The notes: a model not told the origin generated them from the letters alone. A stretch of 64,000 nucleotides of DNA from Pecten maximus (GCF_902652985.1 NC_047016.1:23746001-23810000), one strand, 5' to 3'. Shown: positions 44,834-62,793, numbered from the stretch's first letter. A program made the numbers and translations.

Positions 44834-44897
44834 ATGGCGACGATTTTTAACCTTATTCTCTTGTCGTTGTCTGTGTGTCTGGTGGCAGCAAGGCCGG
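44834..44897 (+). CDS. Gene A coding exon 1: signal peptide (MATIFNLILLSLSVCLVAARP+G) of a 162-aa secreted protein with two six-cysteine modules
   Basis: AAAATGG start context, hydrophobic signal-like peptide, donor G|GTATGT at 44898 (phase 1), TATA box about 90 bp upstream of the ATG. Confidence 0.8.
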
Positions 44898-46246
44898 GTA
44901 TGTATAATATTAGTACATCTTGATATTACCAAAATACTTTGTGTCCATTACATCTCCAACGTTGCTACATATAAATATATTGCTATTTTATCTTCTATAT
45001 CTTGCAATTCACATTTCAGATTTTTCGGCATAGCCGTATAATTTTCTTTTGTTCCCGGATATGACGCAACAGGTGGCGTTACTGGTCAAGATGAAGTATG
45101 TGATTGGTCAATGTAGCGGTAAATGCAAAATGCAGACATACAATTAAAGACGAAACAAAATTAAGATTGAATGCAAGCTGAATAAGTGAATGTATCTATT
45201 CAAATGACACATTAATAAAATCATATTCCTGATTCAAATGCAGTCTTATTATCACCAAAAATGATTCAAACTGGTATAATTTTGTTATCCGTGCTGAAAC
45301 TGCGCATTTATTACTTAGTTCGTTAATTTATTTCACCAGCAGTTTTACATTATAACCACCAGCATTAAAGCTATGCCGTTTATCTTTTTTAAAGATATTT
45401 CTTGTTGAATATGTGTTTTAAAACTTGTACATGTTATGTCCGTTCGGAAACGTATTATTACATACATTTTTATGGTGCATATCTAGAATGAATTTTATCA
45501 TTGACAGAATATGGCGGTTTTCGTATTAAAGTGAAGGTTTCATTAATAGCACGAATGTTTAACTAAGTCTTAATCACAATTGCTACATGTACTAAATACT
45601 TGGTAGAGATTTAGAGGGTTAGAATATTATATCAACGACTACATATAAATAAATTAATAAAAGATATTTTCACACAAAATAAATATGACATACTTATATA
45701 GGAAACGCACCTTCCTGCTACTAACGTATATAAGAATAAACATAACATTGTGATTTATACATTACATGTTTAACCAGCATATGATGTGCACCACTGCAAT
45801 GATTGACATGACATAACAGCGTAAAATATATTGTTTTCCGTAATTCCAGAATAAAGAAGTCGGTGTTAAAATGAATGATTATAAACCAAAGCTGCATGCG
45901 TCAAATACTAAATTATTGTACAAGTTCGAACTAACCTTCCTTTAGATCTGCCAGAGCTCTATATTTTAGATACCGACACTAAATGATCCCTATCTTTCAA
46001 TTAGTACTACTTAGCGACATACGGATTATTACATCACGAAAATGGCTGATACATCTACATTTATGTTGTGAAAGTAATGCCATTTTACATTTCATATCTT
46101 ACTGTTTTTTAAAAAAAGGTCAGTGCAAAGAGTAAGTGTTTTTTGTTTGTTTCTAATTCCGTTTATGAAAAGTGTCCTAACAAACGACATCCTGTTTGAT
46201 CATCAATAAATTGACGGAAGCTAGACATTTAGTTACATTGAGTATT

Positions 46247-46531
46247 ATTCATATCCTATATTTTCGGTAGCCGAAAGGAGATAGTCAATGTCAACAACTT
46301 TATGAACATAATTGATTCGGGGTTTAATTGATTGCTTAATTCATTGCAGTTTTGGAGTGTATGTTGTAAATGTAGGATGATTGTTTTCATTCATATCCTT
46401 TATTTTCGGTAGCCGAAAGGTAATAGTAACTGTCAACAACTTATTGAACATAATTTATTCGGGGTTTAATTGATTTCTTAATTCACTGCAGTTTTTGAGT
46501 GTATGTTGTAAATGTAGGATGATTGTTTTCA
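46247..46531. repeat. Tandem duplication, 2 x 142 bp, in gene A intron 1
   Basis: attcatatcct..ttttcggtagccgaaagg at 46247 and 46389. Confidence 0.9.
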
Positions 46532-46672
46532 CATTGATAACGAAAATAAATGTAGGATACTTTTGATCACTCAACCAAGAAAACTTACTTAATGACAAGT
46601 TTTAAACTTAAAAAGTATGCGAACAAATCAAGACGTTAAGAGCCTTTTTGTTGTGTCAATATAACGTGATTG

Positions 46673-46741
46673 TCCGTAGTGACATCACATCCGTAATGAC
46701 ATCACATCCGTAGTGACGTCACCTCCGTAGTGACGTCACAA
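46673..46741. repeat. 17-bp repeat x4 carrying CRE-type palindromes
   Basis: Unit ccgtagtgac(a/g)tcac(a/c)t; two TGACGTCA and two TGACATCA. Confidence 0.85.
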
Positions 46742-46786
46742 TCGATTTCTGAATGGTGTAGCTAATGAAAAGGCTCACGGTTATTT

Positions 46787-47139
46787 AAGGATTAACATCA
46801 ATTATTTTTTCTGTTATACAGTCATAACAGAAAAAACTGGAGTGTACTCTAAATAAACCGCGAAGCGGTTTATGAAGAGAGTACACTCCAGTTTTTTTAT
46901 GTTATGACTGTATAACAGAAAAAATAATTAATGTTAATTCTTATAATTTAATTTCGTCTTATACACACCAAGATATTTCACTTTCTTTGGCGAACTCTTT
47001 TCTGTGATCAATTATTACGCAAAGTCATCAGCCAATCAAAAATGACGTTACATTTCGCAACGTCAAAAATTTTGTTATGGAGGTATAACAAAATTATTTC
47101 AGCCAATGAAAATGCGTGTTTCATACAAAATTAAATTAT
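46787..47139. mobile_element. Bipartite palindromic non-autonomous element (Crypton-like), young
   Basis: ~75-bp near-perfect stem closed by CCGCGAAGCGG (46858-46868), followed by ataatttaattt...aaattaaattat inverted repeat enclosing two agccaat boxes. Confidence 0.72.
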
Positions 47140-60046: not shown

Positions 60047-60146
60047 CTGCAGCGACGTGAGCGACGGGCTGGACTTCGGCGATTGGCCATGTTTAGTAGA
60101 TCAAAACATTCCTGGGCTGCCATTGTGTCGCATGGGGCTCCGGCAT
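60047..60146 (-). CDS. Gene B exon (DAGAPCDTMAAQECFDLLNMANRRSPARRSRRC): first half of six-Cys module
   Basis: Acceptor tttcactAG, donor CAG|GTATTG; 100 nt, phase 1 to 2, open; not in the ORF track. Confidence 0.85.
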
Positions 60147-60550
60147 CTAGTGAAACATCCACAATGCAATATAGTTCAGGTTTTAGCGGTTTACAATAAC
60201 ACTGGGTGTCAAGATATATTTATAGAAAAAATGATATGGGGTGTTTTATTATGACCTAATTGGGAAATATTTACGTAATATCCACTTGTTCGATATGGCA
60301 TTGAACGTACGCAATATTCTGATATTGATAATATACATGCTGGAACACTAAATCGTATTCTCCTTTTCTATTCATATGTTGTGTTTAACACACACGTAAT
60401 CGATTTCACGTTAGAATTGTGGTCGGTGTTTACAAATTGGTATTTTCTTGATGTGAATACCCCACCCATTAGGCCACAGAATGTGACAAAGATACCAATT
60501 ATACAAAATGTACTCATGAAGGTATATAAGTATATATATATACAAGTTAC

Positions 60551-60729
60551 CTTCTGCCTCGGACGGTAATTCACACGATAGTGCTACATCCTGCCAGTGT
60601 CTACAGGAATGCTCCCCCCAGCCACTGAATCTACAGTCAGCAAGTCTGGTCTCCCCACCATCACACCTCAGATTAGACATCCATATCATTCCTTTGCCTG
60701 GGGTATAGTATCTGATGTAAGTCCCACCA
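60551..60729 (-). CDS. Gene B exon: C-terminal half of SRCR domain
   Basis: GKGMIWMSNLRCDGGETRLADCRFSGWGEHSCRHWQDVALSC; ttcAG acceptor, AG|GTAACT donor; 179 nt, phase 2 to 1; six Cys over two exons, as in group A SRCR. Confidence 0.95.
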
Positions 60730-61882
60730 CTGAAATAATCAGCATATAATACAGCCTGTTTGTGTTTAATGTATAACATCAAGTTAATAAACACACAAAC
60801 AGGGCCGCAATCTGAACGCAAATCACATCTTGTAGAGACAAGGACAGAGGACATTCCACAACGAAACGAAAAACACAAGGAGACACTACAAAACCGAATA
60901 GGAAAACACATGTTGTCAGTTATCGGTCATGATGAAATATCTACAAACCACATATGAAATTAGGATAAGCGTGATTAGGGTTATTTAATGTTTTCAAAGT
61001 ATAGTACCACATGTAACAGATTCAAATCTAAAGATCAACGCATTTTTGAACCATTGAAAAAGTAAACAAATGGTCTTACTTGTACTTGTCTTATAAGCAT
61101 CAATAGATCCAGTATACATTTGTACATATATTGCATAAGAAATACCATATCACACAATATATTTCTCACATTCGTCTGTTGTTTTAATTGCATCTTCGTT
61201 TCGTAATATTGGTTTGTAAATGAAAAAAAATAAAAAAAATATTGAAGCTCGCCTGTTTATCTTGCTTCCTTAACCTAAGGATCAAAAGTTGTATACAAGT
61301 CATGAGTTTGAATATATTTTCACAAAGGTTAAGCACGATGCTGTGGTATTTTTATCTGATACTGTAACATAACAATTACATGCAATTTCAAAAGCAAAAT
61401 AGAAATAAAAATAGATTTCCAATTAAAATAAAGACAGAGAAGTATACCCGAATTTAAAGACTACTAGTTAAGATAAGGAAATAAAAAAGTACTTCTATGC
61501 ATAGATTACACATTGAAATAACAACTGTAAGCTGACAAAATGCCGTATCAATACTTGTGTCTCTTAAATTGATTTTCTCAGTAATTGTTTTCAAACGAAA
61601 TTTATAATGTACCCGTATGTGCGTTTATATGACGTAAACTATTGATTTTTAAGTATTTTTAGATGTGTGTATTTGTTTCATTTCTTTTTCCAGTATCGAT
61701 ATATATTTAAGGGTACAACGCTTTCAGTTCGAAACATGAATCGGGGCGAAATATAATTTATAATCTATGATATTAAGCTATGACAGATTTTGTTATGAGT
61801 GCAGAAAAAGCATGTACTGTAACATCCAACAAGATATGTAACCAATAGTAAGCGGCAATAGAAATCGGAAATAAATATCAAC

Positions 61883-62021
61883 CTGTTTCCCAGTTGTCTA
61901 CATGCAACACGTGCATCATCTATGTTGAAGCCGTCATCACAGACTGTCCCCCATTCACCACCGTGGAACACTTCCAGACGCCCCTCTAAGTCGGAAGGAC
62001 CATCAACCAGGCGAAGTGTAC
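61883..62021 (-). CDS. Gene B exon: N-terminal half of scavenger receptor cysteine-rich (SRCR) domain
   Basis: [45 protein letters not shown] is the canonical SRCR signature; cacAG acceptor, AG|GT donor; 139 nt, phase 1 to 2. Confidence 0.95.
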
Positions 62022-62528
62022 CTGTGGGTATTCAATATACACAACAAATCAGTGGCCTTTTAACGTTTGATGACATAATCAACCTATCATCCAATGAATG
62101 TCCGTGTAATATTGGTTGCATACGTAACTAGTGCAATATACCATGGAATTTATTTCATTGACTGCACATGGTAATTTTGACAATGTTACGTCATGAAATG
62201 AAAATCTTGCAAGAAAATGGCTGCCTCCATTTGATTTCGTCCTTTATAATTTGTCTTTAAAAAACTATCAATTATCATTTATTTGAATTATTGATAAAAA
62301 GCATCATAATTTTGTTTTACATTTTATACACATTATTCGTTGTCAAGCCTTGGGTTTCACCATAGTACGATTGCTTCTCAATTGTTTACGAATAAATGGA
62401 ACCATTGGCAGGTGGGCCCCGAAGTGTAAAAATGTGTTCTTACATTGTGTAAGAATATAATGGTACTTAGTTAATGATTGAATATACTTTGAATTTAACT
62501 AAGAGTCACCTTAAGGTTTATAACCAAC

Positions 62529-62793
62529 CTTCTCCCTCTAGGTGTTTATGTTGTCCCGCAGTAGCCCTCGCTAATTCTCGTTGCCGTACATCAAGCTGTT
62601 CCCGGTCGACTATTATCGTTCGCTTCTCCGAAATAAAATCTAACACGTTTCTATAATTTGCTATAAGTTGCCCGATTTTGAGTACTTCTTTGTCCTGTGT
62701 TTTTACCGACGTAATCCAGACAGACAGTAACAAAAACTTAGTTATACTAAGTAAATAGAGTTTACTTATGTCCATTGTGATACCGTTGAACAT
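62529..62793 (-). CDS. Gene B first coding exon: signal peptide (MDISKLYLLSITKFLLLSVWITSVKT) and charged, probably helical linker
   Basis: ORF 62518..62793; donor GAAG|GTTGGT, phase 1, in frame with the SRCR exon; the start may be the ATG at 62793 or at 62775. Confidence 0.75.

Follow-up and report, generated by a model that had tools for sequence, protein, structure and literature searches.

The stretch analysed here, hereafter the window, comprises 64,000 nucleotides of the scallop Pecten maximus (GCF_902652985.1, NC_047016.1:23746001-23810000; G000:C2:23746001-23810000 in our numbering) and contains two genes, here called gene A and gene B. Gene A encodes a small secreted-type protein with two copies of a six-cysteine module, and in gene B one copy of the same module follows an SRCR domain. 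The stop codons of gene A (51975) and gene B (56083) face each other with 4.1 kb between them, and the arrangement is thus convergent, or tail to tail. An earlier note on this DNA had claimed such a pair of secreted-type proteins, with the module free in gene A and fused to SRCR in gene B. Both points are seen in the spliced models, which equal two proteins recorded by NCBI. The same note had described these two genes; the pair is real and not isolated, and scans of the flanks with hidden Markov models (HMMs) and tblastn place it at the end of a larger cluster. This cluster contains at least four genes (A, B, C and D) over about 76 kb, and A and B form its proximal end. Since the genome is that of an intron-rich animal, a bacterial-style list of open reading frames is of little use, and the exons were read from six-frame translations and the DNA itself (Table 1).

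The introns of gene A are all GT-AG, have good polypyrimidine tracts and follow the phases 1, 2, 1, 2. Its spliced translation is letter-identical to a 162-amino acid (aa) NCBI protein of Pecten maximus, “uncharacterized protein LOC117321571” (P0001), and consists of a signal peptide and two six-cysteine modules. Behind the N-terminal hydrophobic leader, the mature part has 141 aa with 12 Cys. A word-indexed search with P0001 returned only P0001 itself, and a literature search for the locus tags gave no result. The minisatellite that fills intron 2 begins inside the donor of exon 2 (TGTAG/GTAAGG..., the slash marking the exon border), and every repeat unit consequently has donor-like GTAAGG or GTATGT motifs.

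The spliced translation of gene B is likewise identical to an NCBI protein, the 271-aa “neurotrypsin-like” protein of Pecten maximus (P0002), and comprises an N-terminal signal segment followed by a stretch that is helical or coiled-coil, then a single SRCR domain, a single module and a tail of 6 residues. The terminal exon lies beyond the minisatellite of the last intron; it was the sole fitting site in a pattern search and reproduces P0002 exactly. The product of exon 1 aligns with the N-terminus of P0005, a Ylistrum balloti protein described below. Weak Pfam coiled-coil matches, which we assign to the N-terminal region of P0005, together with a heptad-like sequence weakly suggest a coiled coil in exon 1, and the leader in front of it could be either a signal or a membrane anchor. 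From exon 5 the NCBI model splices to 56093 rather than reading through; unspliced read-through from 59304 would append a tail that is hydrophobic and Cys-rich (..CGNIGMLWLCCNIG.. up to 59113).

The module is about 65–70 aa in size and occurs three times in the window. Module 1 of gene A reads C-x6-C-x18-C-x9-C-x7-C-x19-C, module 2 of gene A reads C-x7-C-x14-C-x8-C-x7-C-x21-C, and the module of gene B reads C-x7-C-x18-C-x9-C-x7-C-x19-C; these are exactly the formulas of the earlier note, now located in P0001 and P0002. The pattern C4-x3-L-x3-C5, also proposed there, can be read in all three (VDN-L-PEH and DSG-L-PDA in gene A, AEG-L-QQT in gene B). Each module is encoded by two exons, here called the a-half (Cys1–Cys3) and the b-half (Cys4–Cys6), with intron phases 1-2-1. 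All three a-half exons in the window terminate in TGY AG/gt, which places the inner intron two bases past the Cys3 codon. The predicted two-exon cassette, split in phase 2 after Cys3 and flanked by phase-1 introns, therefore stands, except that in gene A the second module runs to the stop codon and has no phase-1 intron at its end. Across all 8–9 modules of genes A–D the exon anatomy is the same. Internal duplication of the C-x7-C-x18-C half was considered as a source of the module and rejected, with an hhalign probability of 0.5% between a-halves and b-halves.

Moreover, the two-exon SRCR cassettes of genes B and C likewise have phases 1-2-1. Because SRCR and module cassettes share these phases, either could be added, duplicated or deleted in frame, which explains their variable numbers: zero SRCR and two modules in gene A, one and one in gene B, three and two in gene C, and at least three SRCR with three to four modules in gene D.

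Genes C and D were found in 142 kb of flanking sequence scanned with local HMMs and tblastn. Gene C is located head-to-tail upstream of gene B; its N-terminal part is read as a coiled coil, and its SRCRs are split across two exons as in gene B. It is the counterpart of P0005, a 595-aa “DMBT1-like” protein of Ylistrum balloti in which a signal peptide (typical signal end ..AHA/MP) and a stretch rich in heptads precede three SRCRs and two modules. The a-half exons of genes C and D also end two bases past the Cys3 codon, with AG/gt or, in the a-half of the fourth gene D module (D4a), CG/gt. The b-half exons checked in these genes, that of the fourth gene D module (D4b) excepted, begin in phase 2, and most of them end with a phase-1 donor. 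The 5' end of gene D is beyond the scanned region. After the last Cys of gene C, the frame either reads 14 residues to a stop or uses a perfect donor, CAAT/gtaagt. A third repeat array is present in a gene C intron, directly upstream of the first module exon. In gene D the b-halves of the clear modules end in ..CQM, and the probable fourth module is more divergent.

Table 1. Features of the window and its flank (positions counted from the first letter of the window and continued beyond its end; a slash marks an exon border; L-numbers denote scanned sequence pieces; bp, base pairs)
Feature	Position	Strand	Description
Gene A	44834-51975	+	five exons, hand-spliced from window DNA and six-frame translations
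Gene A exon 1	44834..44897	+	ATG and signal peptide (MATIFNLILLSLSVCLVAARP-G); donor G/gtatgt, phase 1; P0001 residues 1-21
Gene A exon 2	48130..48238	+	module 1 a-half, Cys1-Cys3, C-x6-C-x18-C; ends TGT AG/gtaagg, phase 2
Gene A exon 3	50678..50796	+	module 1 b-half, Cys4-VDNLPEH-Cys5-x19-Cys6; donor AAAG/gtaaaa, phase 1
Gene A exon 4	50999..51077	+	module 2 a-half, C-x7-C-x14-C; ends TGC AG/gtacat, phase 2
Gene A exon 5	51858..51975	+	module 2 b-half, Cys4-DSGLPDA-Cys5-x21-Cys6, then TAA stop
Gene B	62793-56083	-	six coding exons, hand-spliced; phases 1, 2, 1, 2, 1
Gene B exon 1	62529..62793	-	ATG, N-terminal hydrophobic signal segment, helical/coiled-coil stretch; donor G/gttggt, phase 1
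Gene B exon 2	61883..62021	-	SRCR first half; ends AAC AG/gttgat, phase 2; Pfam SRCR E 1.8e-13
Gene B exon 3	60551..60729	-	SRCR second half; donor GAAG/gtaact, phase 1; Pfam SRCR E 1.3e-11
Gene B exon 4	60047..60146	-	module a-half, C-x7-C-x18-C; ends TGC AG/gtattg, phase 2
Gene B exon 5	59304..59425	-	module b-half, Cys4-AEGLQQT-Cys5-x19-Cys6-GNI; donor ATAG/gtatgt, phase 1
Gene B exon 6, coding part	56083..56093	-	(G)AA CTT AAC TGA, giving ..ELN and stop
Gene C	~83,729 to 67,673 (G000:C2:23813673-23829729)	-	N-terminal exon, three SRCR (six exons), two modules
Gene C module exons	L010:9165-9067, 8264-8145, 7089-6985, 5786-5673	-	HMM scan, exon borders read
Gene D	~120,216 to 104,139 (L029, L030)	-	at least three SRCR, then three clear modules and a probable fourth
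Minisatellite, 24 bp, ~91 copies	48232..50378	.	fills gene A intron 2
Minisatellite, 40 bp and 27 bp, ~3 kb	56300..59316	.	fills gene B last intron from exon 5 donor
Minisatellite, 33 bp x 66	10901-13095		
Minisatellite, 33 bp x 59	17183-19122		
Minisatellite, 33 bp x 34	20704-21816		
Minisatellite, 25 bp x 370, 9.3 kb	30960-40247		

We then consider how far this family extends. The genome searched contains 918,306,378 bases in 3,983 contigs. A profile of the three b-halves of the window, run against all six frames of the whole genome, found two more copies (E 8.4e-5 and 0.019), both on the same chromosome and strand as gene B and no more than 11 kb away. A profile widened to these five members found three further copies about 45 kb on (E 1.8e-4, 3.1e-4 and 1.7), and the a-half profile found local copies only. 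The family is thus detectable within this genome at this locus only, as judged by short-exon searches of limited sensitivity. The profile of alignment A4 gave no match in the same genome among the 74 of 538 candidates that were scored, which makes this search uninformative. When the A and B proteins are compared directly by BLASTP, 64 residues align ungapped but the match lacks significance (E 0.33), so their homology rests on the profiles and on gene C as an intermediate.

Among 1.84 billion representative proteins, a phmmer search with P0001 found four true relatives, the weakest at E 5.2e-10, and all of them are from scallops. They are a 159-aa protein of Ylistrum balloti (E 1.3e-37), P0005 with its 3 SRCR and 2 modules (E 1.8e-13), a 162-aa protein of Argopecten irradians and a protein of Mizuhopecten yessoensis (73/135 aa). 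The match to P0005 falls on its module pair. The proteins of gene A type are 35–45% identical across the four scallop genera, and every cysteine is kept. In Ylistrum balloti, the A-type and C-type proteins are each recorded on a 69,433-bp contig and have accession numbers three apart; if these two records are taken as one contig, this suggests that the linkage of the two types is conserved in that species.

The history of the modules was read from a maximum likelihood tree of 13 modules from Pecten maximus (A, B, C), Ylistrum balloti (A, C), Argopecten irradians (A) and Mizuhopecten yessoensis (A). First modules (m1) are separated from second modules (m2) with support 98/99. Within this split, the A-type m1 modules form a cluster (92/92), as do the A-type m2 modules (84/75, which is under the star mark of the tree), both apart from the C-type modules. 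It follows that the m1+m2 pair predates the duplication that separated genes A and C. On these alignments and the tree, that duplication is older than the divergence of the four scallop genera, and gene A is an old paralogue that contains only the module pair and is conserved in all four.

Gene B has a different position. Its module is of m1 type and is placed among the C-type m1 modules on a very long branch; the nearest module is m1 of gene C with 30% identity, the maximum that it reaches with any other module. Two separate alignments connect gene B with P0005: one (38% identity, 2e-39) begins at the N-terminus and extends across the first SRCR, and the other covers a later SRCR and continues into module 1. 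Taken together with the tree, these alignments show that gene B is a truncated, fast-evolving C-type copy that kept the N-terminus, one SRCR and m1, and that it is not derived from gene A. The earlier note had proposed that A and B arose by local duplication or inversion; local duplication with inversion is evident, but the closest relative of gene B is gene C and not gene A. The end of gene B exon 5 resembles the m1 exon of gene C (C-G/A-N-I, then a phase-1 donor). Between gene C and P0005, SRCR exons are 54–77% identical and module exons 32–55%, and the modules therefore diverge faster than the SRCR exons.

The SRCR domain of P0002 scores 95.4 bits against Pfam PF00530 over residues 95–188, with a gathering cut-off of 26.1. 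SRCR domains of group A have six Cys and two exons, while those of group B have eight Cys and one exon. Residues 89–188 of P0002 contain six Cys split over exons 2 and 3, and on this reading of the sequence the domain is of group A type. Neurotrypsin, after which NCBI named the protein, combines a kringle and several SRCRs with a C-terminal trypsin-like protease domain; SRCR is the sole Pfam family in the 271 aa of P0002, in which neither the kringle nor the protease was found. DMBT1 has SRCR arrays with CUB and ZP domains, and no CUB or ZP appears in the Pfam tally of eight family members including P0005, so the domain content is not that of DMBT1. What the scallop genes share with DMBT1/SALSA and neurotrypsin is an SRCR above the Pfam threshold, a secreted type and, in genes C and D, tandem SRCR arrays. 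They differ in their six-Cys two-exon SRCRs, the N-terminal coiled coil and the C-terminal helical six-Cys modules.

The class A scavenger receptors have a type II anchor, a coiled-coil or collagenous stalk and a C-terminal SRCR. The family, to which SR-AI, MARCO and SCARA5 belong, is reviewed in PMC4491621. The scallop proteins resemble them in the order of a hydrophobic segment, a helical and putatively coiled-coil stalk and a group-A SRCR, and oligomeric display of the SRCR would be a likely consequence of this order. On the other hand, they are without an evident collagenous region or cytoplasmic tail, have one to four helical modules after the SRCR, and the hydrophobic segment of P0005 resembles a cleavable signal (..AHA/MP).

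For the module itself, Pfam searches with every exon and with eight family members gave only SRCR, coiled-coil-type noise at the N-terminal ends and a single weak row for RGM_N. AlphaFold2 folded the single module P0006 from an 8-row alignment into a model with one short and three long helices, with a predicted local distance difference test score (pLDDT) of 84.7, a predicted template modelling score of 0.64 and five models between 82 and 85. Folded by itself, the two-module protein contains helices only, with a pLDDT of 72. The module is thus predicted to be a disulfide-braced three-helix bundle. No specific PDB match to the single-module model occurs among the matches listed by Foldseek and the VIA fold lists.

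These results show that A and B are intact genes at the end of a cluster of SRCR-module genes. We consider the explanation as a whole probable, in which the module is helical as predicted and the encoded proteins would serve in recognition. Genes B, C and D would, from their domain content only, be secreted SRCR recognition proteins of the DMBT1 or scavenger-receptor kind. The N-terminal heptad stretch would oligomerise these proteins, their SRCR domains could serve in ligand binding, as those of DMBT1/SALSA and class A scavenger receptors do, and the C-terminal helical modules may offer a second binding surface for another partner. Ligand binding by the SRCRs of DMBT1/SALSA in innate defence is established. 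The product of gene A has neither stalk nor SRCR, and would thus be a free monomeric form of the module's binding surface; it might act alone, like small secreted DUF19-type proteins, or compete for the ligand of the modules. Rapid divergence around a constant cysteine framework is compatible with a role in recognition or defence, but it does not prove one.

Several points weigh against this interpretation. The recognition role, as said, is drawn from domain content. The models of genes C and D were read by hand from six-frame translations and tblastn, with tentative 5' ends and a tentative fourth module in gene D. The restriction to scallops was judged at the sensitivity of single-sequence phmmer, at which relatives outside Pectinidae may be missed. 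Expression of A and B is suggested by the NCBI models and by conservation.

The earlier note had likened the cysteine spacing to that of helical DUF19/T20D4.11-like domains, and we regard it as possible, at somewhat less than an even chance, that the m1+m2 pair (12 Cys, about 140 aa) is a very divergent domain of this kind (PF01579, CPG4-related). Gene A would then encode a bivalve small secreted protein of DUF19 type, and B, C and D would be SRCR-DUF19 fusions; the domain would already be known, as one of unknown function, and only the SRCR fusion would be new. The proposal draws support from the ESM Atlas, where a feature search with residues 22–162 of P0001 gave a nematode DUF19 cluster as first match (0.87, 176/256 features), followed by further DUF19 and CPG4. 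The C-terminus of P0005, a 36% identical paralogue, gave the same cluster first (0.83, 158/256 features). By the calibration of the tool, ESM Atlas scores below 0.9 count as leads and not as proof; moreover, homology between the two queries means that they are not independent. The DUF19 proteins of C. elegans are small and secreted, with 140–220 aa and mostly a signal peptide, and 14 of the 51 are infection-induced (PMC3534327); moreover, a 19-kDa “DUF19 domain-containing protein”, K1PB63, occurs in oyster (PMC10058639). The gene A product, at 162 aa, secreted and Cys-rich, falls in this size range, which is resemblance only and not proof of homology.

Profile evidence points the other way. 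No PF01579 match at E <=10 was found in P0001–P0006, P0008, P0009 or any single exon (the membership threshold is 23.2 bits); a search of the genome with PF01579 also gave no match and is uninformative. Moreover, shuffling acts on single modules, of which gene B has one and gene D three to four, and not on a 12-Cys domain. The DUF19 assignment thus has weak support of a non-alignment kind for two paralogues and fails with the Pfam HMM. Compared with the nematode DUF19 and CPG4 (PF15481) proteins, gene A is alike in its size and its small secreted Cys-rich product, and they are the nearest language-model neighbours of two paralogues. The scallop unit differs in being a six-Cys domain of half the size, which occurs in one, two or three to four copies, is found behind SRCR and gives no HMM match.

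A further alternative, in which the module is a new scallop-restricted, disulfide-locked three-helix domain related to neither DUF19 nor RGM_N and shuffled phase-compatibly behind SRCR arrays, with A as a soluble partner or decoy of B, C and D in a recognition system specific to this lineage, seems to us unlikely.

Improbable to a similar degree is the functional proposal of the earlier note, in which A and B act together, B in recognition and A as a soluble partner or decoy; the shared module would then let them bind each other or one common ligand. The two genes do have a common domain, are adjacent and lie in convergent orientation, and in Ylistrum balloti an A-type and an SRCR-module gene would both lie on the 69,433-bp contig, taken as one. 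However, no member is younger or more divergent than B, whose branch is long and whose module shares no more than 30% identity with any other, whereas A is old; if A has a natural counterpart at all, C or D is likelier.

Still less likely is that the module is a divergent relative of RGM_N (PF06535), in which case the scallop proteins would bind ligands of the transforming growth factor beta (TGF-beta) family. RGM_N is a disulfide-linked helical domain of repulsive guidance molecules (RGM) and binds bone morphogenetic protein ligands. It gave the only Pfam row of P0001 apart from SRCR and coiled coil (E 1.3, residues 114–162 against profile positions 20–68). Moreover, the profile of alignment A4 run against PDB sequences placed four RGMA/RGMB N-domain chains first (E 0.15–0.34), with Cys3–Cys6 and a Tyr aligned, and the C3-x8-C4-x7-C5-x21-C6 spacing is common to RGM_N and the second module of gene A. 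Yet all of these matches are non-significant: P0001 reaches 9.7 bits against a cut-off of 24.2, and the other 7 of the 8 members give no match. The scallop's own RGM N-domain reaches 3.5 bits against the module HMM, a score equalled by 87 of 2000 shuffles (p ~0.04), and the RGM match was lost once the b-half profile was widened with genes C and D (profile A7). No RGM chain is present among the Foldseek and VIA matches listed for the single-module model, Cys1 and Cys2 are spaced C-x4-C in RGM_N and C-x6/7-C in the module, and the scallop module proteins have no RGM_C or autocleavage region downstream. For the low score of the own RGM and the match lost in the broader profile, the RGM_N identity was downgraded. 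In summary of this comparison, the RGM N-domain (4UHZ, 4UI0, 4BQ6) and the module are alike in six Cys, the C3–C6 spacing of gene A module 2, a helical fold and an extracellular location, and they differ in the shifted Cys1/Cys2 and the missing RGM C-terminal region, with a similarity that is non-significant. The scallop RGM N-domain lies in a single open frame on the plus strand (L014:1501-1734, or G000:C9:33683823-33684056), with 29.4 bits to PF06535, above the cut-off, and the spacing C-x4-C-x31-C-x8-C-x9-C-x21-C.

Finally, it is barely conceivable that we are dealing with chance reading frames or remnants of decaying pseudogenes and that annotation artefacts account for the gene models. 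The weak donor of gene B exon 1 (G/gttggt) and the introns full of minisatellites stand against eleven canonical GT-AG junctions with the frame kept, the retention of all 12 cysteines in A and all 6 in the gene B module, A-type proteins that are 35–45% identical in four genera with every cysteine conserved, and an identical exon anatomy in 8–9 modules.

On the preferred reading, a cluster of SRCR-module genes with A and B at its end, the kinds of parts are already familiar, namely SRCR proteins, small Cys-rich secreted proteins and exon shuffling. What is new here is the combination of SRCR with the module, and a domain outside Pfam that is possibly a far relative of DUF19. It is a recurrent extracellular domain not covered by Pfam, and misleading names such as “neurotrypsin-like”, “DMBT1-like” and “uncharacterized” are the result. 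The locus is also a clean natural case of domain gain and loss via phase-matched cassettes, in which two unrelated domains share one 1-2-1 signature within 76 kb, and for scallop biology, in a species that is farmed, the cluster is a candidate for a recognition locus that evolves fast.

The remainder of the window is rich in repeats. Long minisatellites dominate its upstream two thirds (478–40247), with strong strand skew and spurious long open reading frames. The 4-kb interval that separates the two genes at their 3' ends contains a 91-bp repeat in 4.9 copies with 98% identity (52953–53399).

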